Position numbers and translations under genes: made by a program. The notes under the pieces are model-generated. The model was not told where the DNA came from, ran no database searches, and saw only the letters and a program-made list of their open reading frames with translations. DNA of 63,078 nucleotides, the filler included, from Lenisia limosa (lineage: Eukaryota; Protista; Breviatea), in assembly GCA_001655205.1 (NCBI GenBank). It is 10 parts of 10 records of this genome, joined end to end, with 100 filler letters (N's around TTAATTAATTAA, not from the genome) between each part and the next. Parts side by side here need not be neighbours in the genome. Positions count along the whole stretch, not along the records: positions 1 to 18,348 come from LPNZ01006100.1; 9 more parts are not named here. One strand, given 5' to 3'. This document shows, piece after piece, positions 1 to 18,348 of the stretch. Numbering within the stretch: the stretch's first letter is position 1; every line of letters starts with the position of its first letter.

Positions 1-3000
1 TTTATAAGCTAGAGTGTGCAAGAGCTAATCGCTTCAGAACGTCGGAAGAGATTGTAGAACGTCAAGACGAGGGTGGAAACCACGACATTATCAGAGAAAA
101 GGTTGGAAGGATGGGCTGATCAAAATAATATTTCTGAGTTCATCAGTTTTTCTTTCATGAACTTCACTGCATATTGTAACCAGTGTCCAGTTTATGTAGA
201 ATATTTCTTTGATCTTTCTCACACTGCCCCAGGTGCGTAGCGGCGACTGCATATTCCTGGGTGAGGTCACTGAGAAGCTCGTCGTCACCCCCAACATAGA
301 CCATTTGATTGGCTTGATAGATACAATGTAATCACAAAACTGGTCTACGCCACAAGTCCAATATCTCTATTTAGCGTAAGTGGAGCTTCAGCGTAACACA
401 TTTATTCAAGAAAGAAGGGGGTCAGACGTAATAAACTTTCTGCCAAAAAGGGTAGTTCTCTGAGCATGAGATGTTGGACACGGTGAATCCCATTGACTGA
501 AGCCCCTCAAGATGAACATTTATTATATTACATAAACAACGCGTCAGCAAGTGTCAAAGTAAACGATGGAAGAAAAGTCACAACTGATACAACCTCATTC
601 CAAATTAGATCGGGGTAAACGTTAACATACTGGCGTCCTGGTTCGCCTCCAATTGAGGTGACGCTGAGCTGAACGTCTGATGATACTCTGGGTTTATTAT
701 TTTTGAAGTGATGTATGAACTTGTACTCAAATATATAGTAGCTATATGATGCACATAATATATGCATATGATAGAGTATATGATGCATGAACTTGTCCTC
801 ATAATATGATATGTATATAGTATGATGCATATATTACTGTGTATGTGTGTGTCTGCTTTGGGGTAAGAAGTTATGGCACGCACCAAAAAGCTGCTGCTAA
901 TTTTTCGAAAACATAATGGAGGAAGCAACATTCTTAACGATAACAAAACGCGATATGGCATCCGCAGCTTCAGTCAAACACCACTATTCAATTCGTCTCA
1001 TAATCTGATATTCATCCACATAATTACACTCTGAGGAATAATCTTAATTATTGCCGCTTTGTTTATTTGAAAACCAAATTATTTGAAATGTAGTCAATCT
1101 CAAAAACAAAAAAAAAATGACCGCACACCCTGAGTGGAAATTGCCGTTTGTCAATCCGTCTCGAGAATTGAAGACGATGGGGTAATCGGTTCCATTAGCC
1201 TGGGTGTCAAAGTCAATTCTAGTCATACAATAACAGCATGATGAACTCAATGATCATATAGTACGAAATACATGATTTCATACACTGTAAATAGCTATCA
1301 TATATATACAGTGACCGGGATAAGTCTTGACCGATTTGCAATGTGATTTCCCAAGGAAACTCGGTCAAGACTTATCCCTGTCACTGTATATGATATTCTA
1401 TATCGATATGTGATATATATATTATGTATGCATATAATAAACATACATATAGTATGTATAATTTACTACATTGCCCATATTATAGTACTATATATCATAA
1501 TCATAGTATATCAGATGCTGTATTTAGAATTATTGCTTTAAGTTAGAAACTACTTATCGGTAAATCCTCGATAATATACATGTATATATATGTATATATG
1601 ATATATTAGATGTTATTTTCGAATCAAAAACCAGCTCAAATAATACCTTATATCTAGTATCTGCATACAATCCAGCAAGAATCTAACCATCTCACCGAAA
1701 GAGACATTTCAAATAAGGTTGGTGGGCTGTTGCCGAACATGTTTGACTTGGCAAAAGTCAGCTGGTGGTAACCGGGAGTACCCGGGGTTGTAGCATCAAA
1801 TGTTTGTCTGGGTAGTCAAAATCAGTACTGAGATTTTCACTCAGAGCCAGAATGAAAATGAAATATCGATCTTTATCCAACCCTAATGGGTCTTTATCGA
1901 GAATATTCCATAATTAAAGCACAATAAAATAAGAAATGCCTCAACAAAACAATGACGCCGGAGGATCAAATATTATAGCTTGAACTGATTAGGCCAAGCA
2001 CGCCCTTTACTCTGACGCATAAAGTATTATAATATTATATATTCAGAGGGTATTGTGAAAATCATAAAGATTATTCTGTAATAACAGATTCATCATTTAC
2101 CATAATCCCCCCCATACGGAACATTTAGTGTCATTTGAGCAGTGGAACTGGGCGTAACACTGATGACATTTACAGCCGCGTTAGTACGTAACTTGGGAAT
2201 CACAAGCACCCAAGCTACGATTTTGTCGTGACAAACTCTCCCACCTCTACAGGGCAATGTTTAATATTCTCAACATGTAAGAAATTGGCAAATGTTCAAA
2301 AAAAAAAGACCTAGAAAATGTCTTTGAGTTTTCATAGTATATCATAGCAATTATGATATCATATAATACTTGGCTTCCCATTATTTCAAAAAACAAAATC
2401 CTGAAAACACTCCTATGTGGTAAAATCCAAAGCCCCCACCCTGATCCAATTAAATAGTTAACGACGCTGCCTGCAGGAGCGTTTTGGGCGTAAATCTGCA
2501 TGAATAAGAGCAAAACATTCACTTTGACATGCGGTTTGAATTTTACCACCCAAAACAATACAATAGCATACCTGGTGAAGTTGGAACTTTTTGATGTTGA
2601 CCGCGTAGCTGTGTCCGCCGCCAAGAAGGTTACCATCTGTGTTATGCTGTTACAAACAAAAAAAGACACTGCATTAGTACTTTGTTGTATTTTTGAATCG
2701 TATTATCGGAGAGGATAAGAAAACAAAAAGATAACTAAGATACTTGTTCCCTCAGAATGGTCCCTGTGAACCTGAGGAAGACTGTATTGGTCAGGTTCCA
2801 ATCATCCAACTGCTTGCAAAGTTGCAGGCAGATATATGAGGAATTTACAAGAAAGGACACGAGGGGCTATCGTAATAAAAAATTTTCGATCTAATCCTTT
2901 TCCCAAAAATATAACCGTATATGCGTTTATCCCTTTCTGGTTCATTATGATGAAGTGAAGCCAGATGTACCTCCCTCAAACTCAGTTTCATCGCACAAAC

Positions 3001-6000
3001 GGCGTAACCACCTCCCCCGGAATTGCGCAATGACATGAGAGACCCCGCAATGACAACAGCGTCTTCGGTGTTTCCCAGTGTAAGCGACTTGGCAACCGAG
3101 CTACACGCAGTATTGGCACTGTTTGTGACTAGGGTGTTAGTTTGTTACATTGTCTCTCCCAAAATCAAAGAATAAAAATCGAAAAATGGAAAAAGGGAGT
3201 ACTAATTGTAATACCCGGAAGAAGCCATCATTTTCAGGATGGTGATGTCAGGCAGCTGTCAACACTCATTAAATTTGTCAATGACGGATTAGACCGATAA
3301 AAGGCAATTGCTCTTCTCAAGAGACTATTAATCAAAACCCGCGTACAAGTAGGACATGTTGAAAGTCCGGTTTCGGACGTGGGAGCAGAAGACGACTTGG
3401 TGAAGGCCCCTGTCGCCTTGTGGATTGCCACTGTCACGGTAAGGGGAAAAATAGACGTAAATGCGAGTAATGAATGCATAGGCACCAGCATCATCATGAT
3501 TATCACCAGCATCACAGCATCATTATTATTATCACCAGCATCATCATTATTATCACCAGCATCATCATTTATTATCACCAGCATCATCATTTATTATCAC
3601 CAGCATCATCATTATCATCACTTAACCAACATCATCATTATCCCCAATAACATCAATAACTTAACAAAAATCATCAGCATCAACGCCGCCATATCCCACC
3701 GATTGACATCCATCTGAGAGGTGTGGCGTCTGTTGGCGTACTATTGCCTGTGGTGGCACCGCTTCCTCCAGTCCACTCAACCTGAATATTTAAATTACCA
3801 CAGTACAATCACTATTTCAAGAATAACTTCCAAATTTTAAATATCATATCTGAAAAGGCGTTTTCGCAACATGCTATGCTTCGAATTTCACACATATCAG
3901 CAAAATGATGCTTGGAAGAAATGTAAAAAAAAGGGGTAATGCGATTCAGAAGCGTTCACATTGTTATGTTTACACATATTGAGGCCGTCCACATTATTGT
4001 AGCTGAAAAGTCAGCCGTCAACAAACAAGTCAACAGAAATCTTACTCAAAAGAACACGTGACCCCCAACCCCCTTGACACCCCCCATATCTCAATGAGCC
4101 ACCATACCCAGAAAGAGTATTCTCCACTTGCATAGTCTGCAGCCCAACTCAAATGAAGAGGCTCAGTGTTGCCGTAAACACTATCACTTGACACCTTTGA
4201 TGAATAAAAACAATTGAATCATCCAATAGATTCAGTATTCAGAAATGATCACATGGTCAACTTTCGAGTTGAAATGATAAAACTCAAAAGCAATCTGCAA
4301 TACCCCAAAGCCCACTTGCGAAGACATCAACTCGACACCAGTTCCACCATTAACAGCAACCATTAAACGGGCGGTCACGTCAATTTCCTATTAATGATAT
4401 CAACATATATTGGTTTAAAAAAGAGCGGAAATCGTAGATAGATTTGGATTATGTGGTTCAATTCATTTGTTAGAAATACATTTTAAAGATATCATACTAT
4501 ATGATTGAAACAATTGAAGAATAAAGAGTACCACCAACACCAGCTGGAATGTAAGCAGGAATGAATGCCTGGACTAGTACAGCACTTGGCGGAAGGGTAG
4601 CACTCACTGAAAGACCCAAAGACGCATATGAAGTGGTTGCTGGGATGGGGGGGTGTATAAAAGATTTAAGAGACTTTAATTATTACACGGCTGGATATCA
4701 CACCTGTAATAATGGCCCAAAAAGTAAAGAAAATTACCAGTGGAGTGCTAAATGACAACAATCCTGCTTACCAGTCGCAAGAGTATTCATTGTAGCGCTT
4801 CTTTCAATTTTGGTGTCAATGGGGAAGGTCACTTTCGAGGGATCTATTTTGATCAATTTCGAGTGTAGAATAGATATGAGACATATCGAGAAATCTAGTC
4901 TGGAGTGTAGAGAAGTCCAAAATACCAACCCAACCCACCCATCATAATGCCATCAGCCGTTAAACCCACCCATCATAATGCCATCAGCCGTTAAACCCAC
5001 CCATCATAATGCNNNNNNNNNNNNNNNNNNNNNNNNNNNNNNNNNNNNNNNNNNNNNNNNNNNNNNNNNNNNNNNNNNNNNNNNNNNNNNNNNCATAATG
5101 CCATCAGCCGTTAAAGATTGTGCATGGAAGGTGTCGGCCAAAAGGTTGTCAAAAGACGCGGATTCAACAGATATGCTTCTGTCAGCCCCGTATTGAAGAG
5201 TCGCCCTAAGGTTGTTCATAAGGAGAATATTGTTTCCAAAACTCAATTTCATTTAGTGCAAAACATTAAGAAAATTAATAATAAATAACCCTATTAAATA
5301 GCTATGTTTGCATTAATAACTATTATGCGTTTCTATAGGAAGTATCTTGAGCAATTAATAGTACAGGACCTTAGTTATAGTAATAATAAGAATATTGAGA
5401 AATAAAAGAAGGATATGACAGATGCCAACGGCATATCTTATAATTTGTCAAATATTACTGATAAGATATTTTATAATATAGCTATCTTCAATATTTTCCA
5501 GGAAGAAATACGTTCAATTTTCTGATATTTCTCTCCAGTCAATATTTACCTTATATGTCTACCTTCTAGCCTCCAGGGTGTAAATAAAACATCAATAGAT
5601 TGAATGAAAGAAAATATGAAAAAGGTCACGTCATAATTGATGAGCATGTGATGAGGGAACGTGCCACGTCACCAGGTCAGGCTGATTAGCAATCCTCACA
5701 AGTTTTGTATCAAGCCAAAATCCTCCACAAACATCTTGTACAAATATTAAAAGATATTTGCCTACATGTAAACACGGGGTTTGTACATGCCCCCCCCCCC
5801 CCNNNNNNNNNNNNNNNNNNNNNNNNNNNNNNNNNNNNNNNNNNNNNNNNNNNNNNNNNNNNNNNNNNNNNNNNNNNNNNNNNNNNNNNNNNNNNNNNNN
5901 NNNNNNNNNNNNNNNNNNNNNNNNNNNNNNNNNNNNNNNNNNNNNNNNNNNNNNNNNNNNNNNNNNNNNNNNNNNNNNNNNNNNNNNNNNNNNNNNNNNN

Positions 6001-6131
6001 NNCTCACAGATGAGTACAGCAGGAGGTCTCCCATATGTATGATATTACTATGTGGAGAAAACGATACCAAAAACATACCAAGTTGTTGAGGAGAACACTG
6101 CTAAAAAGAAGAGAAGGAAGCTAATGCTCAT
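1..6131 (-). CDS. Multi-exon gene for a predicted secreted Ser/Thr/Gly-rich protein, family not recognised; 3' end near or beyond the window edge
   Basis: ATG at 6131 gives the signal-peptide-like MSISFLLFFLAVFSSTTW followed by a GTATG donor. Many short GT-AG exons follow, e.g. VEWTGGSGATTGNSTPTDATPLRWMSI (~3700-3783), VTNSANTACSSVAKSLTLGNTEDAVVIAG (~2970-3130), QTFDATTPGTPGYHQLTFAKSNMFG (~1701-1812), IDFDTQANGTDYPIVFNSRDG (~1130-1220). Joining them into one gene is inference. Confidence 0.65.
1309..1386. mobile_element. Family A MITE (Tc1/mariner-like), intact copy in an intron
   Basis: Arms CAGTGAC(C/A)GGGATAAGTCTTGACCGA are inverted with one mismatch and flanked by TATA on both sides. CAGTG termini with a TA target are typical of Tc1/mariner elements. 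Confidence 0.8.
3485..3690. repeat. Imperfect (ATC/ATT)n and ATCACCAGC low-complexity intronic repeat
   Basis: Repeated atcaccagcatcatcattatt-like units are visible in the sequence. Confidence 0.8.
4935..5114. repeat. 31-bp tandem repeat (cccacccatcataatgccatcagccgttaaa), interrupted by a gap
   Basis: cataatgc recurs at 4943, 4974, 5005 and 5094. Confidence 0.9.
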
Positions 6132-6346
6132 GTTGTTCCTTTTATAAGTGAAACAAAAATAAAAATGAATTTGTTGTATCTGCAGATCTGTAGATCAGAA
6201 TTTTTTCTTCAACCAAGCCTGGTTCTCATTAGGTGTTAGTATTCTGCTATCTGTCCCCAACTATTCTATTTTTTATCCGAGCGTCTGCCGAGTGCTGGAA
6301 GTATATTATATAGTCAGTATATGTAAATAGTTGGCCCTCAGGAGGT

Positions 6347-9300
6347 TTAGACGTTGACATTGATTCTCTTGCTCTGAATCACCGCCACCCCTTGTTCAAC
6401 CCGAGCTCAACCAATGATCACCCCGGAGAAGATATGACTAACCTCCATGTATCAAAAGCAATAATATGTCTCACAATCCAAAACACTAAAAAAACACCTG
6501 AAAATACAACACAAACCAGCTACAAAACTCTCAATAATACGCTCTCAGTCACACGTCCGTTTTGGTTCGGATGACGCGATATTGCGGCCATGATGACGGG
6601 GCCACCCACTCTGCCGGCATCCTGGGAGGTCAATGAGGAGGCTTTTCCAACAGGCACGATAATGTTCAAGAACGCACACAGAGGAATTGTTTTGAAATGC
6701 GATGAGAAAAACTGATAATGATATGATGAATAATGGAACTTGCCCATAATACCCCCTCCCTCACCCCAATTTGGTGTCAGCAATCGTGACTCTAGGCCCG
6801 CCTTCTGCTAAAAGGGACTGGAGGCGTAAAGGTCTCAAGATATCACATGGTGTATAGGTACAGAAGGTAAGAGCCAACACCAGAGGGAATCATAAGAATA
6901 CTATCCATTATATAATCTAAAAAACAGAGCCACTAATCCCCATAGACCTGTCACACACACCACAATGAACCTGCGAGGACCCCTCGCTAACCTGCGAGGA
7001 CCCGTTCCGAGGAGTACGGTGGCTTGAGACTGTCGACTCTGCTTGGTTCTTTGTCATTGACTGTGACATGGACTGGGGGGGGGGGGTAAATGTGGCTNNN
7101 NNNNNNNNNNNNNNNNNNNNNNNNNNNNNNNNNNNNNNNNNNNNNNNNNNNNNNNNNNNNNNNNNNNNNNNNNNNNNNNNNNTGAAAAAAACACATAAAC
7201 AGAATAAATCTTCCTTGTCAAAGGGAGTAAGATGAAAAGGTCTAGTATTCAGCAACGAACCTTGATCAAGCCGAGGGTTGGGATGTCTCCTGGCGCATGG
7301 GCCAAAACTGCCTAGTATGGTCAAGGGATTTTCGATGGGGGTTTGCAGTCACTGTTTTTTTTTTGCACCAATTTTATAATAATACAACACAATAAAATTG
7401 GTACAGCAAAAGAATACTATATGAGAAATAGTTATGCAATTATCCTATCACTTAGCCTGAAAAAACTACACCGTGTTTAGAGCACTACCCCCCAACCTTG
7501 AGGAGTCTGAGAGCGGTGCGCCAGTCGCCATCGATATAGGCGTCCACTGCCGAATCGAATGCCGTCAGACACTCCGTCGAAAGGGGGTGACAATCGTCTA
7601 ATGGTCAGACATTCAGCGGAAAGTGGGANNNNNNNNNNNNNNNNNNNNNNNNNNNNNNNNNNNNNNNNNNNNNNNNNNNNNNNNNNNNNNNNNNNNNNNN
7701 NNNNNNNNNNNNNNNNNNNNNNNNNNNNNNNNNNNNNNNNNNNNNNNNNNNNNNNNNACGGTACTAAATAGTCGTTGCCGTGGTCTGTGATGTGACCGGT
7801 GCGGTTAGTGAGGGTCCCGGTGCGGTTCGTCAGTTGGTCGTTGCGTAGGACAGTGGCTTTGGAACCATTGCGAGCCTCTCGTACCGCCGCGATCCACCCG
7901 GCCTCCCTCCAGGACAGGGCCGAGGGCTGGCAGTTAGCGGTGTTAATACAATACAAAGAGGTTGGATCTGGCACATGGAGATATTGGATTATGGGGTATA
8001 GGAACTAAGAGTTGCATTGATAACTGATTATGAAATAGCCCTATCAATAAACCTTACCTGGGGTACCAGCGGGCTGCTAGAGAGGGGAGCTATATTGATA
8101 GACACGCGGGTATCAGGGTCCACTGAGGGGAGCGTGGGTGAGGCCTTTTTCGGCTTGGTGCTGGTGTCAGGCGATATGTCTGGCATTTCTTCCTGGGGGG
8201 GGGGGNNNNNNNNNNNNNNNNNNNNNNNNNNNNNNNNNNNNNNNNNNNNNNNNNNNNNNNNNNNNNNNNNNNNNNNNNNNNNNNNNNNNNNNNNATATCA
8301 TAACTTACCTCGTCCTTGATATTGGTAAGCACTTTGAGCTGAGACGCACTGCCCTCTGTTCCCAATGTCAGGATCTCAGACCCCTGTGAGTTCTCCGTAC
8401 TGAGAGGCGCGTTCGGCATGGCCTCCTGTTACATTAGTTACACGATGCTGTGAGGTAAAGCTTGCATGTGCGCATTAGCACCCTCCTTTAATAATGTGGC
8501 TTTCCACCCCATGCCGGACCTACCTCGAGAGCATAGGATAGGACCGGGGCCGAAGACGTCTCGGGAGCCGGGGGGCTGCGGTCGCGTGATGGTGAGGCTG
8601 GCGCAACTACCGCGTCAATGTTAACGTGAAATCGAAAAGTGGCGCAATTGTGAATATGAATAAAAAAAGTGAGGGTTATTATGCACAGAGTAGATTACCC
8701 CACCCGAAATAACCGGGGCCTTTAGACTGTTGGAGCTGAGCCTGGACTTCAGGATGGGCACAGGCATCGGAGTGGGTGTGTCCGACATTGACGTCACTGA
8801 GGGCGATGCTTCGGCCGGACTGGGCGGAGTGAAATGGCAAAGTTGTGAGCGNNNNNNNNNNNNNNNNNNNNNNNNNNNNNNNNNNNNNNNNNNNNNNNNN
8901 NNNNNNNNNNNNNNNNNNNNNNNNNNNNNNNNNNNNNNNNNNNNNNNNNNNNNNNNNNNNNNNNNAGTCTCGTGACAAAATCCCAACCAACACGTCATAG
9001 CCTCTGGGAAGTGTGTCAAGGAAGTCGCACCACCAGACAAGGATAGGTTCGGACACTGTGCTTTCTGTGGGGTTAGCTTGTCATATCGTGTGGCTAATAG
9101 GGGACTGTGAGAGCGTGGATAAGTATACCAGTCTACTCGATTCAGTAGCAACATGACCTCCCATCTCAACAGAGTCCCCAAACCTTGGCTGTAGCTGAAG
9201 TCCTGGGGTGGAGGCGAGGGGATGAAGGAGTCAAAGAAACTCTCGGATGGACTTGGGGCATGAGGAGTTGAAACATAGTGGTTATGCCATGTACCTCAAG

Positions 9301-10470
9301 ATTTCTCGGTCCCATGAAAAATTCTTGTCTCAATCAATCCAAGTCCTATCCGCCAAATACCTTTGAGGAGCGGCTGAGTTTGAAAACGACTGCGAGTTAA
9401 CAGCAATTTGGTCGATGACGCGACAGAACGGCTGTAAAGATGAGTCCGCTGAGTATCTAAGAGCTCTTTCAACATTCAGACACGAACAAATAACTTGCTA
9501 AGCAGAAATAGGCAATACAGAAATGCGCTAACAGTGAGTTCATCAGACAAGAGGTCCACAGCGGCCTGGGACAGAACAAGGGAAGACGAGGGCGGTGCAA
9601 TGTCGGAGAGAGATACCAATAGAGTAAGCTGCGGAAAGAGGGTTACGTCACCTCAGAAACATGATGGTAAAAGAATGAAACAGACACCAAGTACCTCTTT
9701 CTCAAGACCGTCTCGGAAGATAACCTGTTTTGAGCTGTTTCCTCTCAGAAGCCTCCTTTGACTGGAGGTTTGCTTCCTCTTCCGCGAACTGGAGACTGTC
9801 ACATCTCATGCAAATATTGTATAATATACAGATGATAGATAATAATATTTGCTATTCACTTCAGAATCTACTGTGTATCATGTTCTTGCTAATGTATGAT
9901 ATGATATAACATATAATGTATCTTCAACTACAAAATGTGTTCATTGGGGTATAATGTGTTCATGGGGGTATAATCCAGCATCCTGTCATGCTATTATCCA
10001 AGAAAAAGAATTAGCGTCTTATTTCATCTCTATTATCCCGAGATGTGTGAAACTTCGACTTTAATTACCCCACGATGTCGTACTGGAGGGGCGATGGAGA
10101 GGGAACCCTGCAGTCTCATCAGCATGAGGGGATTTCTGTGGAAAGTGAGACAATAGCACCGTACCTCGGGGTCACTTCGGCTTCAGGGAATAAAAATGAT
10201 CGTACGCATATAACAAAAACAATTAGCCATTTTTATGAGTGCCCCCCCCCCCACCACATCATCAGCCGTACTGAAAATAGTTTCCAAGGTGTTTTCGGGA
10301 CTAAAAGAATGAGGCAGAACAGATGTAAGCAAAGGTTAAAAACTAACAGTTACCCCCACTCTTTAGTCTCAGCCGGCATGGGCAGTTTGTAGTCACTGGA
10401 CACGAGTACCGAATCTGCGGGGAGGATTGTAGGTGGTCCGTGCCGGGAAAGGGTCTGAGGGGTGAGGAGT
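6347..10470 (-). CDS. Ser/Pro/Arg-rich exons: long C-terminal tail of the cyclase-like gene, or a separate gene
   Basis: GT-AG bounded exons such as VSSSRKRKQTSSQRRLLRGNSSKQVIFRDGLEKE (~9695-9800), PHAPSPSESFFDSFIPSPPPQDFSYSQ (~9186-9270) and IIVPVGKASSLTSQDAGRVGGPVIM (~6545-6665). Candidate TAA at 6347-6349. Gaps prevent a full splice model. Confidence 0.5.
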
Positions 10471-10547
10471 CGCAATAAGTGAACGGTCAGTATAAAAATA
10501 TGAATTACCCCAAACCCCTATTTCCCCCCATGTCAGCCCACCCCTAC

Positions 10548-13500
10548 ATGTGCGGGGGACGCCAATGGTAGGGCGTGGGTAGTGCAGATATCGGGACCTG
10601 GATGGTTAGGTGCATAATATGTTGCCAAATGAGTAAAATAATAATGGTGTAAATACTATACTGTAATCCAATATCTCTCAGAAGCGTGATGGTGTGGACG
10701 GCTTCGCCTTTGTAGGATGCCAAAGGAAGGAAATTGAAAATTTCTCAACGATCCAATGAGTCTTCCATACCCCCCCACCAATATACACGGTGTCCAGTTT
10801 GTGTCGGGAGCCGATAGTGCATTCTAAAGCCTCTCCAGCGTGGATGGCGATGTCGACTTCCAAGCGCTGCGAGGGTAAGGGGGGGGGGGGGNNNNNNNNN
10901 NNNNNNNNNNNNNNNNNNNNNNNNNNNNNNNNNNNNNNNNNNNNNNNNNNNNNNNNNNNNNNNNNNNNNNNNNNNNNNNNNNNAGTCTTGGCCATGCATG
11001 CCAATGCCAATGGGAGGTGACAAGGTGGGACAACGGCGTCTACAAACCTCAAGCCAGGCTAAGTACTCTTTCGGGATTTTCTGTTTTCGATGTTCTCTTT
11101 CAACCGCTCTCCTCACTGCCTCAAGCATGCTGCCTTGGAACTGCGGGAGGGGGGTGAAATGGGAAATTTATGACACACAAAAAAAGTCCAAAATTAGCTC
11201 TGTGAACTAACCCCCCCTACCTGGGCCATAGCCAGCAGTGGACGGTCACAGGCATCCTTGGGGTTCTTGCTGAACTCTGACGTTTTCCACACAATCAAAA
11301 CGCCCTGGCCCACTGGGCGGGAAGGCGCTCCCCCGTAGGCGTAGCTGAATGATAAGCATGGTTGTGTATTACTTTGATTCTTGTTAATGCAACTAATAGA
11401 AGATAGCGCGCGGATTGTATACTATTGGGTAATCAGGGTACTTGTTCTATATTTGTCTGGCTTTAGAGCATTATACCCCCCCCCCCCACGCAAGGTTATG
11501 AACAGTGCCGGCAAATCGGTTCAGAAAGAGCTGGAAACATGAGATGAAAAGAGGAGAAGAAAAGGATGTTTTGAACGTATTTCTGTTGCTTTTGGAATAC
11601 CACGTGAACATATTAGACCCGCTGGAAAGTAGTGAAAACAACACATCACCTCTGCGAACCGAAATATCAGGCCCCACGGCGCTCGAGATGTTTGACAGGT
11701 TCCGGATGCGGACGTAAACAAACACTCCACGAACCTGGGGGGGGGGNNNNNNNNNNNNNNNNNNNNNNNNNNNNNNNNNNNNNNNNNNNNNNNNNNNNNN
11801 NNNNNNNNNNNNNNNNNNNNNNNNNNNAACACATGATGAAAAGAACTCAAAAGGGATAATGGGGGGTGGGGGAGGCGAATGTGAGAACTGGTATGCCGGA
11901 AGAGGCATGTCGATTCCTTTTTTCCACCCAGGAGACTTGTGATTGTTTTTTTGAAAAAATACAATGATGAAGAGACGGTTTTTACGATTGATGCTCCTGA
12001 TCACGACACGGCATTGACCTTGTTCTGGCCACTCAGCTCCTTTTCAACCTATTATCATGATGAACTTATTTCATTCTGAATTAAGAGGTATCCTGAACCT
12101 TCAGCTCTAAAGATAATTTGGACGATATCCCTCGACCTGGGCGATGTGATCCGAGGGATTGAGGTTACCGCTCTCTGCAGACCACGTCCGGCGAATCTTC
12201 ACCGTGTGTTTATTTCAAAGAAGAAACGACAGTGGCAACTGATACGTACACACTACAATGTGTTATGTATGATAGTATCTGAAACTGCCCTAATCACCAA
12301 AATTGCGACCAGATACATACACCCTTTCTTTATTTCTCATCTCTTATATAATATCATATATGATAGAGTATAAAATATTTCTGACTAACAGATGGTAGGA
12401 GGTCAACAAGATCTGCAGATTCGTGTCCACGTTCTTGAAGACACACAAGACGGCATGTGCCCAATGTTATTTCCATTATTTTATGATACTGACGAGTTCT
12501 GAAGTGGTGGGTTAAGGGGACGATATCATTTATTAAGAATTGCCTTTCAACCGTGTTCACTAACTTTTAAGTCAAGACCCAGTCTGGGTCCGCGCCAAGA
12601 TTGACCAGCTCCTATCTAAAGGAAGCTTCATTGCGTGTTTGAGTCAGCTTGACCAAATCAAGCATTTAGGAATATTTTTACTTTTTCGTACATTACCTCT
12701 TTATCATCCATCGACCCGATTGCTATGTGCTGTTTCATCTAAGTTGTTTCACTCCAATTATCTTTATTCTTATTTTCAGCATTTTCAAGATCTCCCCAAA
12801 AGGGTGCCAGCTGCTAGCCAACTGGCCAAGGTCTACCAGCGAAATAAGAAACTGAACTCCCAATCGAAGGACACGGTCACGCTTGCTCTCAAGGGATTCT
12901 CCACCTTCACGTAATTGGGAAAAACAGTTTAAAATTTGTTTTGCTTCACTTTCTAACAACACCTTTTAAGCAAAAAGTTTGCACTGTGCTACAGTGGCTC
13001 GGAGAGCGACGACGACGAGAGCAGCCAGTATGCATAAATGTGTCATTTGCTACGTATACTACAATTGCGGATCATATATTATACCCCCCCACCTGTCGGG
13101 CCGGGGTCATGACGGACAGGTCACCACCGCGCGATAAGTTGCGCGTGACTAACGCGGCACCTGGAGGGATGAGAGCAGAATGTGTGGCATGTGCATTGGA
13201 TTGGACAACATACCTGCTTCACCCATGCTTGCTTGCATGAGACCGACAATCATCTTCAGATTCGACTAAATCGTCATTTCGCTTCTTTGAGTTTCTTTTT
13301 CACATTGAAGATTATTGGCAAACAGCACACATGAAAAACATGTCACGCGAGTCTCAAAATAAAACAGCCAATACTACTGGAAATCAGTCAAAATACGGAC
13401 CCCCCCCCCCCAACCAGCATAACTCCGGTTTCAGTTTCGTTGGAAACAGTCAGTTTGTTAAGTGCGATATTAGGCGTCTTAGCCACTTGCTCCATCACAG

Positions 13501-16500
13501 TGAACATTCGGGACTGAGAGTGAGTTGGGGGGGGGGGGTGATGGAAATACGTATAATTCTATGCATTTCTCCTATTATGTATGTAGTAGTATAAGATGAT
13601 AAATATCACATACACTCAAGAACATACACATGATAAGATACTCCAACTTATATAAGAGAAATGGGATTTAGTGAAATATGTTAATTCACCCAATCATATT
13701 TACAATCCTATTAAAAAGATTTCAAATGATGCCTCCGCATACCACGGGATGGATGAAGATCTGCCACGCATAACGAGAGAACACAGCAGAAGCGATGACA
13801 AGGGACATTGTGACCAACACAATAGTTACAAGGTTCCACCACGCCTCATCCACCACATGCGACCGTATATCCACACTGGAGGGTTACGGGGGTTGCCAAT
13901 AGCTACTACAGCGGTTCTATGTCCAAAAACAGATTTTGCATCCACCATATCTCTAAGACAGACCCCGGCCCACGTGGCAGTAGCTGACACGCCACTTGAC
14001 GATGAGACGTCGGCAAGTTCATAGTTCCGTCGGTCGCTGCGACTGCGGGACACCAATGACGTGTTGCCGATAGTTAGGGAGTCTGNNNNNNNNNNNNNNN
14101 NNNNNNNNNNNNNNNNNNNNNNNNNNNNNNNNNNNNNNNNNNNNNNNNNNNNNNNNNNNNNNNNNNNNNNNNNNNNNNNNNNNNNNNNNNNNNNNNNNNN
14201 NNNNGTAAGTAGTCCTTGCGAGGCTACCAGGATATTCAGCATTGTTGACTGCATTCTCCAACCAGGGTTAGCTTTTGTATAGTATATGTTGCCATAATCC
14301 CCGTCGGCTTACAAGGGTTAAACGATGAGTCAAATTTGGAGATAAGGGACGACATGGGTGCTGCGGAAGTGACGGGGGACGTGGAGGCTGTGATTGCAAG
14401 AGAGTCTAGCATGGCTGGGGGGGGGGGGGGAAATTNNNNNNNNNNNNNNNNNNNNNNNNNNNNNNNNNNNNNNNNNNNNNNNNNNNNNNNNNNNNNNNNN
14501 NNNNNNNNNNNNNNNNNNNNNNNNNNNNNNNNNNNNNNNNNNNNNNNNNNNNNNNNNNNNNNNNNNNNNNNNNNNNNNNNNNNNNNNNNNNNNNNNNNNN
14601 NNNNNNNNNNNNNNNNNNNNNNNNNNNNNNNNNNNNNNNNNNNNNNNNNNNNNNNNNNNNNNNNNNNNNNNNNNNNNNNNNNNNNNNNNNNNNNNNNNNN
14701 NNNNNNNNNNNNNNNNNNNNNNNNNNNNNNNNNNNNNNNNNNNNNNNNNNNNNNNNNNNNNNNNNNNNNNNNNNNNNNNNNNNNNNNNNNNNNNNNNNNN
14801 NNNNAGTATTTTGGAACTAAGGTTGCCCTTTGGACCCAAAAAAGTCTGAACTTCTCGATGTCACACCCATGAATATTGTCATTTTACAGACATTCTCGGA
14901 CTGAGAAGCCCCCCCTTGGAACCGTAGTAAACTCCACGCCACGCCCCACAAGGAATAGCACGGACGAAATGCTGATTCGGGTTGACCGATCAATGAGTCG
15001 CTTTCCGGCCTTCAAACTGCGTGCCGGCATGTTGACTGCATCGTCGTCGCTAAAATCAACCACCTGTATAATGAGATGCATCAAAAAAGGTGAAGCAACA
15101 GGGCAATATCTTCGCAATCACATTTATGTATTATGAGAGACTAATGATAAAAATTAAAAATCAGTGTTCTTCTTGTAACTAAATAGGGAGAGGTACTGTC
15201 AGGTTTCGGGGTAATTATTGACCCTCCCCCACGTTTGACTGACCCTCCCCCCCACGTTTGACGCTTTGCCCTTGGACTTCTCAATGACTTTCGTGAACTT
15301 CAGCAACTTTCCCGCCCTTGCTGATGCCCTAAACGATGAGGCCGCATATCGCCATGGGGGTGGGGGGTGGGGGGAGAACGAGAGGTTCTCAATGCTTATC
15401 TTCATCTAATTAGCATTCCGAAAAATGCTTATAGTCAGCCAAAGCCAATAATGGACCAGACAGATTCGGAAGTAAATATATTAACCAAGGCTTCGCATTC
15501 TGAATTAATCATAACACAGCCTCAGTTATGGATATTCCGTACCCAAAGCCTATGAGGCTCACCTGGCAGCTCGGCCAGCACGGGCCAAATAAAGGGCTCG
15601 ACCTGTTGTTGGGAACACATCCACTCCGAACAGGTACAGAATGTCGGGAAATAAAGATATCTAGGGTGGTAAACATCCAAATTATCAAACAAATATCGAG
15701 GCCATTTTGGAGGTTAGGGTTACTACCACCAACACTCCCCATGCCTACCAAAGCCAGGAAATCAAGCCAGAAGTAGAAGCCCATGTATCCCTCATCCTGG
15801 GCTCCGATGTTGAGGAACAGTTCAATGGCGAACAGCACGAATACCGCCAGGGTGACAAGCCCAATTGCTGCGAGGCGTCAAAGGGTTTTCAGCGGAGTGA
15901 AGTGCATTTGTCAGGGAAATGTACACCCAAGTATGTGAAACTGCATATAAAACAACCCTCTGTTGTATGAATAAAGATAAACCGTATTTGCTATTTGTTA
16001 TTAACATATCGTATTATACTACTGTAAATACAAATAAAAAAAATAAAAAAAACATATCGATATTCCGCACGCACGTACATATATGTACACCACTCACAAA
16101 ATCGGCCAGGAAATCATTAACACACCAAAATATCACACATAAAACCCTTCAAATCGCATTTATACATGAACGGTTAAACGCGAGGAGAAAAAGGAGGTTC
16201 GGTTCACACTCAAACAAATAACTGCAGAATAAAAAAGAGATAGGTTCCTATCAACCCCAATTTACACATATCAGCAGATGGTTGCAAGAAAATAATTGCA
16301 AGGTCAGGCGCGAAAAAGGCCCAGAGTGTGCATAACGTCATAAGAATCGAGATGAACCGTGAGTCAAGGAAAACTGAGAGTCTAAAGAGAAATAAAGACA
16401 AATCGCAAAAGAAACCGAGTTTAATCTTGGTTATATAAGTTTAGAGGGGTAGGGATGAACGGTGCCTTGCTTACACTGACTTGGGCTGCTCTTCTACTGA

Positions 16501-16640
16501 CTTCATCATGGCGTCTGCCCTTGCCAGATCGGCTTAAAATACTTCTCCTCTTGCGTACTCCTCTTTTCAAATTATTTGTAGCCTTCTTTTCCTTTTTTTC
16601 CCAATTTTTCCGTCAAAAACAAAATTTAAATACTTCCTGA
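10548..16640 (-). CDS. Voltage-sensor (ion-channel-like TM)/class III adenylyl cyclase fusion, ACalpha type, catalytically degenerate
   Basis: Exons in ACalpha order: S1 LSVFLDSRFISILMTLCTLWAFFAPDLAIIF (from 16381); S2-S3 LFAIELFLNIGAQDEGYMGFYFWLDFLAL; basic S4 SSFRASARAGKLLKFTKVIEK; GKRLIDRSTRISISSVLFLV; TM VLVTMSLVIASAVFSRYAWQIFIHPV; ETGVML-SNLKMIVGLMQASMGEA-GAALVTRNLSRGGDLSVMTPARQ (ends 13093); VRGVFVYVRIRNLSNISSAVGPDIS (11734-11660); LFLNRFAGTVHNLA-YAYGGAPSRPVGQGVLIVWK; EVDIAIHAGEALECTIGSRHKLDTVYIG-PDICTTHAL. True start not resolved. Confidence 0.8.
10654..10708 (+). repeat. Family C dispersed intronic repeat (partial copy)
   Basis: TACTATA...TCCAATATCTCTCAGAAGCGTGATGGTGTGGACGGCTTCG matches the copies at 40283, 42951, 48488 and 53361. 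Confidence 0.75.
12392..13037 (+). CDS. Antisense spliced gene nested in intron 11735-13092 of the cyclase-like gene; product unknown; probably has further upstream exons (~11860-12245)
   Basis: Three phase-consistent exons, 12392-12456, 12572-12910 and 12995-13037 (TAA), give MVGGQQDLQIRVHVLEDTQDGI-QDPVWVRAKIDQLLSKG...LALKGFSTFT-GSESDDDESSQYA*. CTAAC branch-like motifs precede the acceptors at 12391 and 12571. Confidence 0.6.
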
Positions 16641-17304
16641 TTCAAGGGTAACGAATATCCAAAATTTGATTCAAGGGTAACGAATACACACATTGTACAC
16701 AGGCACACAGGACAACAGGACAAACAGATAAATAGATAAACAAGAGATAGGTGGTGGTGTGTACTTGTATAGACGCTTTGATGATTATTACAATTGTTGA
16801 AAAGAAAAGATTATGAACCTCAAAAAACAGCTGTAACTCAGCGCCTAATTCCCCTCTGCTATTCTGACCCACATTATATGCAATTAAACTTGATAGTCAG
16901 GTAATTTATGGAGGTAAACGAAGACAGGAAGCATAGGCACCTCTAACGATCTCACGGCTTCTTCTGTCATGTCATTGTGAGACGGCTTGTTGGCAGAACA
17001 ATCCGAACTGTGAACAGCAACCATGTTTTCCTGTTTGAGGGTGTAAATATATGGGCTTTTGGGACTTCTGTAAGCAATTCAATCCGTCTCTTTCTTCGTC
17101 TATTATGAATAGGCGAGGGGTCTGGGAATCTCGTTCGTGAATCATGAGGAGGAAAAGAATGCAAGAATGGAAAATAATATATTCTTATTACCCCTTTTTG
17201 AAGGATTAGCGATTCTTCCATCTTTCCCTTAAAATGGTAAATCCCAATGATTAGTATTATTGTCACACATGTATAAATAAACATAACGTGTACTTACCCC
17301 CCAG

Positions 17305-18295
17305 GCTGTAAGCCAGCGGCTAAGGAGGAAGGTAAAGGCATTCACCCCAATGCAGTCTTTGGAGTCGACCTTCTCCTTGCAGAAGAAAAAAACCCGTGAG
17401 ATGCTTGATCGAGACGATCTGTCACTTGATTGGTTGCGTGTGTAATTCAGATTCACTTCATTCAATAGTTGTAGTGATATACCATTCAATCAATCACTTT
17501 ACAAAGAATGAAAAGCCAAATATTAAACGTTTTTTTCTTGAAATAAAAAAGGACAACGCAGATATGCGCTATTATTGGGTTTTCAAGGACCAACATTTTT
17601 TTCCCCAGTGCAACGTCTTAACAGTTTAGTGGGAACACAGCTGGAGTGCCCGAGATTGTTGAGCTTTGTTCGGAGTACATTTTGGAGCATGGTGAGGGGA
17701 GTTCATTATCAAGAAGAAAAATTGTATAGTATCTGGTCAGAGGGCAAAAACATCAAGATTAATATATTTTTGTGCGTCACAATACTTTTTCCTTCAGAGC
17801 ATTTAGCTTGCTTTCTCAATTTGAAAGCGTATTTTGAAAGGGTTTTCGGACTTTTCCTTTGATTTCTCATGTAGTTATGAGATAGCTCCACTGATTGATG
17901 TTGTTTTTTGGTCGCCGCTTACACAATGCTTCCCTTTCACTCTTCAGGAATATCAATAACAGGAGTGTTCCGAATCCCTGGTAGTGCCATTCAAATTAAA
18001 CATATGAAGTTTGTGTACGACTCAAGTGGGGGGGGGGCACTCATCCTCGCATTACCCAAGGAGACCCTGATTTTTTTACTTGTAGCCCCAAGAGTTTTTG
18101 TTATTCCTGCTTTTTCTCACATACTACATATTTGAATACAATGTTGCAAAATGGTCTGAATTTGACAGTGTCTTTTAAAACAAATATTCCTTTATCATCA
18201 GTAAAACTGGTTTTTGCAACCTTTTTTTTTTTCATTGTTCCAGAACGAGAGTTTTCACCCCGCGATGTCAACAACGTTGCGTCCCTATTTAAAGA
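17305..18295 (+). CDS. RhoGAP-domain protein (truncated at scaffold end)
   Basis: Exons encode HPNAVFGVDLLLAEEKNP, GVPEIVELCSEYILEHG, ISITGVFRIPGSAIQIKHMK (arginine-finger motif GVFRIPG) and RDVNNVASLFKE. Confidence 0.85.
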
Positions 18296-18348
18296 GTGGG
18301 AAGGGGGACTTTGGCCTGTGCATTCATATTATCATTAGGTGTCATATT

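Follow-up and report, generated by a model that had tools for sequence, protein, structure and literature searches.

The Lenisia limosa draft genome (assembly GCA_001655205.1) contains, within a 63,078-nucleotide stretch that we refer to as the window, a minus-strand locus whose predicted product joins a voltage-sensor-like membrane module to a domain homologous to class III cyclases, and in that domain both metal-binding aspartates have been lost. The locus lies in the part of the window spanning positions 1–18348, a piece of draft eukaryotic assembly interrupted by 10 runs of N, and is probably a single gene of at least 23 exons that extends from a short N-terminus to a low-complexity tail. 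The order of its parts is the one given in the initial annotation of this DNA: voltage-sensor-like S1–S4, a further membrane helix, a linker, and a single class III cyclase-homology domain. We put at roughly one half the probability that this is a real gene and that its voltage-sensor-like membrane protein carries a cyclase-fold domain that is catalytically dead.

Cyclase-homology domain and its missing catalytic residues

The recognizable cyclase region is carried by five minus-strand exons: Ea (11645–11734), with the beta-1 sequence YVRIR in place of F-x-D-I-R; Eb (11490–11530), reading LFLNRFAGTVHNL; Ec (11221–11344), with GGAPSRPVGQGVLIVW in place of G-x-x-D-K-x-x-G-D; Ed (11048–11140), the helical insert region; and Ee (10779–10866), reading LEVDIAIHAGEALECTIGSRHKLDTVYI and ending in phase 1. 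The open frame confirmed by RNA in the exons upstream continues without a stop through 11734–11645, 11530–11490, 11344–11221, 11140–11048 and 10866–10779. When spliced together and compared with a local hidden Markov model (HMM) of 54 bacterial PF00211 domains, the region scores 20.5–21.8 bits (E 6e-9 to 1.5e-8 for one test) and aligns collinearly with positions 17–140 of 198, whereas the best of 2000 shuffled sequences reaches 5.8 bits and the reversed sequence −1.6. A pairwise alignment of the spliced domain to a Leptospira cyclase gives an E of 2e-7. In a six-frame profile scan of 748 open frames, the sole match is the frame that contains exon Ee (E 6.5e-4).

Individual exons were recognized to differing degrees. 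In hhalign, Ee alone aligns at the expected columns (86%, P 4.6e-6), as does Ea at columns 16–35 (P 0.02), and Ec alone is misplaced and not significant. Atlas, a protein-language-model search, returns PF00211 in 93 of 100 matches for Ee and in 66 of 100 for Ec (top score 0.91), and does not recognize Ea. Exons Eb and Ed are phase-consistent and align to the profile within the spliced domain. A tblastn search with Ee matches Leptospira cyclases, with 45% identity over 29 residues. A Leptospira cyclase that had been picked through exon Ee served as the seed of the profile; the other exons and the Atlas results are independent of that seed. The class III cyclase fold that had been proposed from the exons is thus borne out by a profile match far above the shuffles and by the independent assignment of Ee and Ec to PF00211. 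From beta-1 to beta-4, the fold-marking glycines and the hydrophobic pattern are retained.

The catalytic residues are not. Among 45 real cyclases, D19, K59, D63, N144 and R148 are invariant. In the profile alignments, D19 is replaced by Arg in YVRIR (11716–11702), and K59, the purine-contacting lysine, and D63 are replaced by Arg and Gln, respectively, both in RPVGQ (11319–11305). The loss of both metal aspartates and the Lys-to-Arg change, as claimed in the initial annotation, therefore hold in a profile alignment to real cyclases. These changes do not depend on splice choices because the residues lie in the middle of their exons. They are also reproduced by a 5697-base contig from a DNA sequencing run that contains all of the sequence words of the locus and possibly comes from the same sample as the window assembly. 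The contig was assembled independently of the window, though possibly from the same reads; it corresponds to window positions 10500–14435 with zero differing letters, and its depth is ∼27× including the cyclase exons. With the mid-exon positions and the contig in agreement, the loss of both metal-binding aspartates is solid. Class III cyclases work by a two-metal mechanism. A domain without either metal ligand is predicted to be non-catalytic: it would be unable to synthesize cyclic AMP or cyclic GMP and unable to supply even one half of a shared active site.

The transition-state residues have to be treated differently. The initial annotation read the Asn and Arg as Cys and Ala in PDICTTHAL (10595–10569), a string that is present on the minus strand, as is KLDTV (10800–10786) in Ee. 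PDICTTHAL belongs to a doubtful 50-base exon, Ef (GPDICTTHALPLASPAH, 10548–10597), and the two positions are Cys and Ala if Ef is included and absent if it is skipped. Ef has a negative coding score, and either of its canonical donors (10548 or 10542) would end it in phase 0, whereas the next exon, Eg (10354–10414), needs phase 1; a direct splice from 10779 to 10414, omitting Ef, keeps the frame. Eg, (D)SVLVSSDYKLPMPAETKEW, reads (D)SVLVSSDYKL..., resembling the I-L-V-S strand of cyclases, only from the phase-1 acceptor. Read this way, its coding score is strongly positive and its phase matches that of Eh (10255–10300), PENTLETIFSTADDV. The profile alignment ends at I-G-P-D-I in every splice variant, so the Asn-to-Cys and Arg-to-Ala changes are positional guesses. 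This assignment is not solid, depending as it does on a frame-breaking exon. Splicing may remove the Asn–Arg helix; alternatively, Ef may be frameshifted by one base, or may be joined through a GC donor at 10537, which would be unusual.

The intron between Ee and Eg also contains a high-copy dispersed repeat of ∼50 bases (10657–10706), identified from contig depth and located 60 bases upstream of Ef. Its summed depth is 27,842, compared with ∼27 for single-copy sequence, and it occurs in >600 contigs at 90–95% identity, and in RNA contigs too.

Downstream of Eh, a tentative exon Ei (10069–10135, KSPHADETAGFPLHRPSSTTSW) would begin the low-complexity tail; it has a phase-0 acceptor, a GTAATT donor and an ambiguous coding score. 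Frames beyond the cyclase domain are rich in Ser, Pro, Arg and Thr and of low complexity, and ten tail and flanking frames contain no Pfam domain and no TPR. The tail exons that had been drawn to ∼6347 remain putative: phases can be followed only to 10135–10069. A longer, manually assembled chain beyond 10069 was one base off at two donors, offered no unique open path and was withdrawn.

Voltage-sensor-like module and gene model

Six upstream exons between 16509 and 14950 join with canonical splice sites and compatible phases to encode 185 residues. The putative first coding exon (16475–16509) begins with an ATG (MMKSVEEQPKS-) and has a GTAAGC donor whose phase fits the S1 exon (16266–16381, FISILMTLCTLWAFFAPDLAII). 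The following exon (15749–15867, VFVLFAIELFLN ... FYFWLDFLAL) carries S2 and the start of S3. The end of S3 and the first half of S4 are encoded by 15563–15660 (GRALYLARAGRAA-), and the second half of S4 by 15256–15328 (RASARAGKLLKFTKVIEK). The S1, S2–S3 and S3–S4 exons are bounded by AG and GT sites and are in frame. The last of the six (14950–15063), placed by the splice model, follows S4 and ends in phase 0 within the start of a hydrophobic stretch (ISISSVLFL).

In the spliced N-terminal product, hydropathy peaks mark S1, S2 and S3. S2 contains F-A-I-E, an F-x-x-E motif, and S3 contains W-L-D. S4, assembled across two exons, reads GRALYLARAGRAARASARAGKLLKFTK and has 8 basic residues, mostly at every third position; this S4-type pattern occurs only 2 times in 28,832 residues of six-frame translation. 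The F-x-x-E motif and the S3 Asp correspond to the aromatic/acidic charge-transfer pattern known from voltage sensors. By these patterns, S1–S4 qualifies as a putative voltage-sensor-like module. No pore signature was seen in the sequence that could be read, the S5 region probably falling within the assembly gap at 14436–14804.

The middle of the gene is supported by RNA. A polyA metatranscriptome run from the same study as the DNA run contains 7% of the words of the locus, and its spliced contigs confirm six exons, from 14414–14313 to 13160–13093, with GT..AG junctions and one open frame, at a depth of 2–9 over 12900–14499. The first of these (14313–14414, RNA contig 10) is joined to 13974–14082 by a junction that skips the assembly gap at 14086–14204. 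The second exon encodes a Ser/Thr-rich stretch with an N-T-S glycosylation-type site, located between the sensor module and the next membrane helix, and this loop is probably extracellular. Hydropathy and motif together identify one membrane helix after S1–S4, WWNLVTIVLVTMSLVIASAVF, encoded by the third exon (13743–13875). The fourth (13415–13513) is covered by two RNA contigs that leave its middle 9 bases uncovered. The fifth (13214–13265) ends in MGEAG, with the GEAG linker motif at 13225–13214 as originally reported, and the sixth (13093–13160) reads AALVTRNLSRGGDLSVMTPARQ. The linker after the last membrane helix is ∼90 residues long and ends ...MGEAG / AALVTRNLSRGGDLSVMTPARQ. The locus is thus transcribed and spliced, with patchy coverage.

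The statement in the initial annotation that frames and splice phases are intact stands for the modeled N-terminal and cyclase junctions, all of which are GT–AG with compatible phases, and is not confirmed at exon 10597–10548, which with either canonical donor is out of frame with 10414–10354. The composition of the modeled exons also resembles that of coding sequence at this locus: GC content is 0.50–0.54 in exons versus 0.43 in introns, and GC at third codon positions is 0.60 in the cyclase exons versus 0.58–0.59 in the RNA-confirmed exons. In a crude codon-usage test, the modeled frame is the best of three in 5 of 5 cyclase exons and also in Eg and Eh.

Three assembly gaps are bridged by the 5697-base contig, with 73 letters in place of the 92 N written at 10892–10983, 52 in place of 81 (29 fewer) at 11747–11827, and 58 in place of 119 at 14086–14204. 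All three are intronic in the model, and the third lies within an RNA-confirmed intron. No DNA-run contig spans the gap at 14436–14804. The flanking exons do not match in phase, since the upstream one (..14950) stops in phase 0 while the downstream one (14414..) requires phase 1, and this gap therefore probably hides at least one exon. That exon probably carries the rest of S5, because an even number of helices after S4 would be needed to place the cyclase domain inside the cell.

Relation to known cyclases and competing readings

Fusions of a channel-like domain to a cyclase, known as ACalpha (Weber et al. 2004, as described in PMC5746546, PMC2279260 and PMC3283738), occur in Paramecium, Tetrahymena, Plasmodium, Toxoplasma and Cryptosporidium. 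In these proteins a six-helix domain resembling voltage-gated potassium channels is joined to a catalytic domain (PMC5746546, PMC2279260, PMC3283738) that has all of the canonical catalytic residues and measured activity (PMC5746546), and a G-x-G motif follows the sixth helix (PMC3283738). The L. limosa product is similar in that a putative N-terminal channel-like membrane domain with a basic S4 and a single C-terminal class III cyclase domain are present in one polypeptide. It differs from the catalytically complete ACalpha in lacking both metal aspartates and the lysine; in the RNA-confirmed sequence after the helix, there is no G-x-G, only GEAG at 46 residues past the helix; and no TPR was found in the tail and flanking frames. 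Given the missing catalytic set and the absent G-x-G, we describe the architecture as ACalpha-like and do not class the protein as an ACalpha.

The best sequence matches found are Leptospira interrogans WP_000849133 and its relatives, bacterial class III cyclases with 7TMR-DISM and TPR to which the whole spliced domain is collinear. These enzymes differ in their membrane module and in possessing all five invariant residues (D, K, D, N and R) and a complete C-terminal third. The bacterial sequence nearest to Ee (L001 836-3001, Leptospira interrogans p1) encodes a cyclase whose membrane domain is of the 7TMR-DISM type and whose C-terminus carries a TPR. In the known S1–S4 sensor/phosphatase system, a sensor likewise carries a cytoplasmic domain of enzyme type, in place of a pore or in addition to one; there the effector is active, whereas here it is of cyclase type and predicted to be non-catalytic. 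Incomplete cyclase-fold halves pair and shape regulation in the C1 and C2 domains of mammalian membrane adenylyl cyclases and in soluble guanylyl cyclase. Each half of such a pseudo-heterodimer retains one complementary half of the site; the domain described here appears to retain neither.

The open frames and intact splice sites, maintained despite far divergence, argue for selection on something other than catalysis. The protein would then most likely be a non-catalytic relative of the ion-channel/cyclase fusions, in which the dead cyclase domain might serve as a dimerization or regulatory module under the voltage sensor. Such a domain might pair with an active paralogue and hold it down. 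The most specific form of this proposal, a lineage-specific and selectively maintained voltage-sensor/pseudo-cyclase in which S4 movement would be relayed by pairing of the dead domain with an active cyclase paralogue or other partner, we consider rather unlikely as it stands. The alveolate channel/cyclase fusions are among the few proteins thought to link membrane potential directly to cyclic AMP, and how sensor and cyclase communicate is unsettled. A natural fusion of a sensor to a non-catalytic cyclase fold would make it possible to tell apart what the cyclase domain contributes structurally or in regulation and what it contributes chemically. If the pseudo-cyclase is indeed maintained, it could place cyclic-nucleotide output under voltage control while itself catalysing nothing; no fully non-catalytic protein of the channel/cyclase fusion architecture would have preceded it, and cyclases would join the enzyme families with voltage-linked pseudo-enzymes.

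Several observations weigh against a real gene for a sensor-linked dead cyclase. The sensor module is recognized from its residue pattern, and searches with single exon-sized pieces of it returned no Pfam, PDB or tblastn match (tblastn against plasmids gave random matches or none). Across the gene, ten exon-bearing frames gave no relevant Pfam match and four single exons no PDB sequence match. The profile score of Ee is slightly flattered because the seed of the profile was chosen through that exon. Profile positions 141–198, the C-terminal third that includes the K-G-K region, are unmatched in all three splice variants, and inclusion of Ef via the donor at 10548 shifts the frame and produces a stop at the junction into 10135–10069. 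The splice model is confirmed by RNA over 14414–13093, and RNA depth is zero over both the voltage-sensor and the cyclase exons. One RNA contig is unspliced at the 13093 donor: it extends 82 bases into the intron and encounters a stop after six codons.

Finally, no orthologue or paralogue emerged from our searches. In phmmer, exon Ec had one match among 1.84 billion representatives, a bacterial Ig-repeat protein that we rejected as spurious, with only a short repeated G-x-G-V-x-V-T-W-K string matched. A tblastn search of Ec against plasmids gave random matches or none, and neither two metagenome scans nor a word-based protein search with the Ee frame turned up relatives. A collection of 15 billion proteins lacks ten ATG-started frames from the window; this genome is apparently unrepresented there, so these blanks carry little weight.

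The strongest competitor places the cyclase exons in a decaying 3′ portion of a duplicated ion-channel/cyclase gene whose upstream part is still transcribed and spliced. Selection on the cyclase exons would then have ceased, and the catalytic losses would be plain degeneration. We regard this as a serious though less likely explanation. It would account for the loss of all catalytic residues at once, for the one-base frame incompatibility of Ef, an exon otherwise of the right length for the cyclase helix at that place, and for the unrecognizable C-terminal third. RNA depth is zero over 10900–12899, RNA reads through into a stop after 13093, and the intron adjoining Ef contains a high-copy repeat. 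Cyclase families are also known to spawn pseudogenes, according to a Trichomonas study that appears in the reference list of PMC3283738. Evidence against decay comes from the five cyclase exons and Eg and Eh, which retain open frames, canonical sites, phases and exon-like composition despite their divergence, and an in-frame path is available when Ef is skipped. Nor does the RNA separate the two ends of the gene: because the sensor exons are equally uncovered, the missing cyclase RNA is better explained by patchy sampling of a rare transcript than by a mapped 3′ end. A decaying paralogue would be an ordinary by-product of gene-family turnover.

The unspliced RNA contig raises an overlapping alternative, that the main product is a short membrane protein whose transcripts retain or end in the 1358-base intron after 13093, with the cyclase exons confined to a rare or alternative isoform. 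The contig is the only one to reach the donor at 13093; it carries the stop (...TPARQVGGYNI*), and no cyclase-exon words occur in the RNA run. It covers 13011–13092 and ends in a GTC repeat and not in a visible poly(A) site, the depth here is only 4–9, and long introns commonly yield reads from pre-mRNA. The donor itself, GTGGGGGGGTATAAT, has the same form as the donors at 11489 and 10778 of the modeled cyclase exons. The RNA beyond 13093 is therefore either pre-mRNA or a short isoform, and we consider it improbable that the short form is the main product. An active cyclase whose losses merely reflect a wrong splice model or assembly errors would be in keeping with the poor assembly, with its ten gaps and its homopolymer runs at intron ends, but is nearly excluded: YVRIR and RPVGQ are well within exons with no nearby alternative frame or exon offering F-x-D-I or G-D, the DNA-run contig agrees base for base, and the bridged gaps are intronic and too short (∼52 and ∼73 bases) for replacement exons.

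Intron ends and other features of the window piece

Many introns have ends marked by homopolymer runs. On the sense strand, GT is followed by 7–13 G (5′ ends at 15253, 13411, 13090, 11487, 11217, 10776 and 10252), and in many introns a run of 10–14 C directly precedes AG (14417–14430, 13527–13538, 11737–11746, 10879–10891, 8195–8205 and 7075–7086). Three introns have GTGGGGGGG..TATAAT/TATGG in common at their start. Two of the homopolymer ends are at RNA-confirmed junctions, and in at least one intron (13092–11735) the two ends are complementary. Such G- and C-run ends could act as a signal for splicing, or could have been left behind by a mobile element that generates introns. Six of the 10 assembly gaps (5803, 8206, 10892, 11747 and 14436 among them) abut G or C homopolymer runs; the gaps thus seem to mark points at intron ends where sequencing or assembly broke off.

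Rfam and tRNA scans of the window piece were empty. Tandem repeats lie at 3476–3680 and 4932–4993: CATCAT-rich units of 21–29 bases, and an exact 31-base duplication that adjoins the gap at 5013–5093. A near-perfect hairpin occupies 1304–1391. Its arms of 43 bases are 86% complementary and its loop has 2 bases; the AT-rich region around it has no long open frames, and the hairpin may be a small inverted-repeat element.

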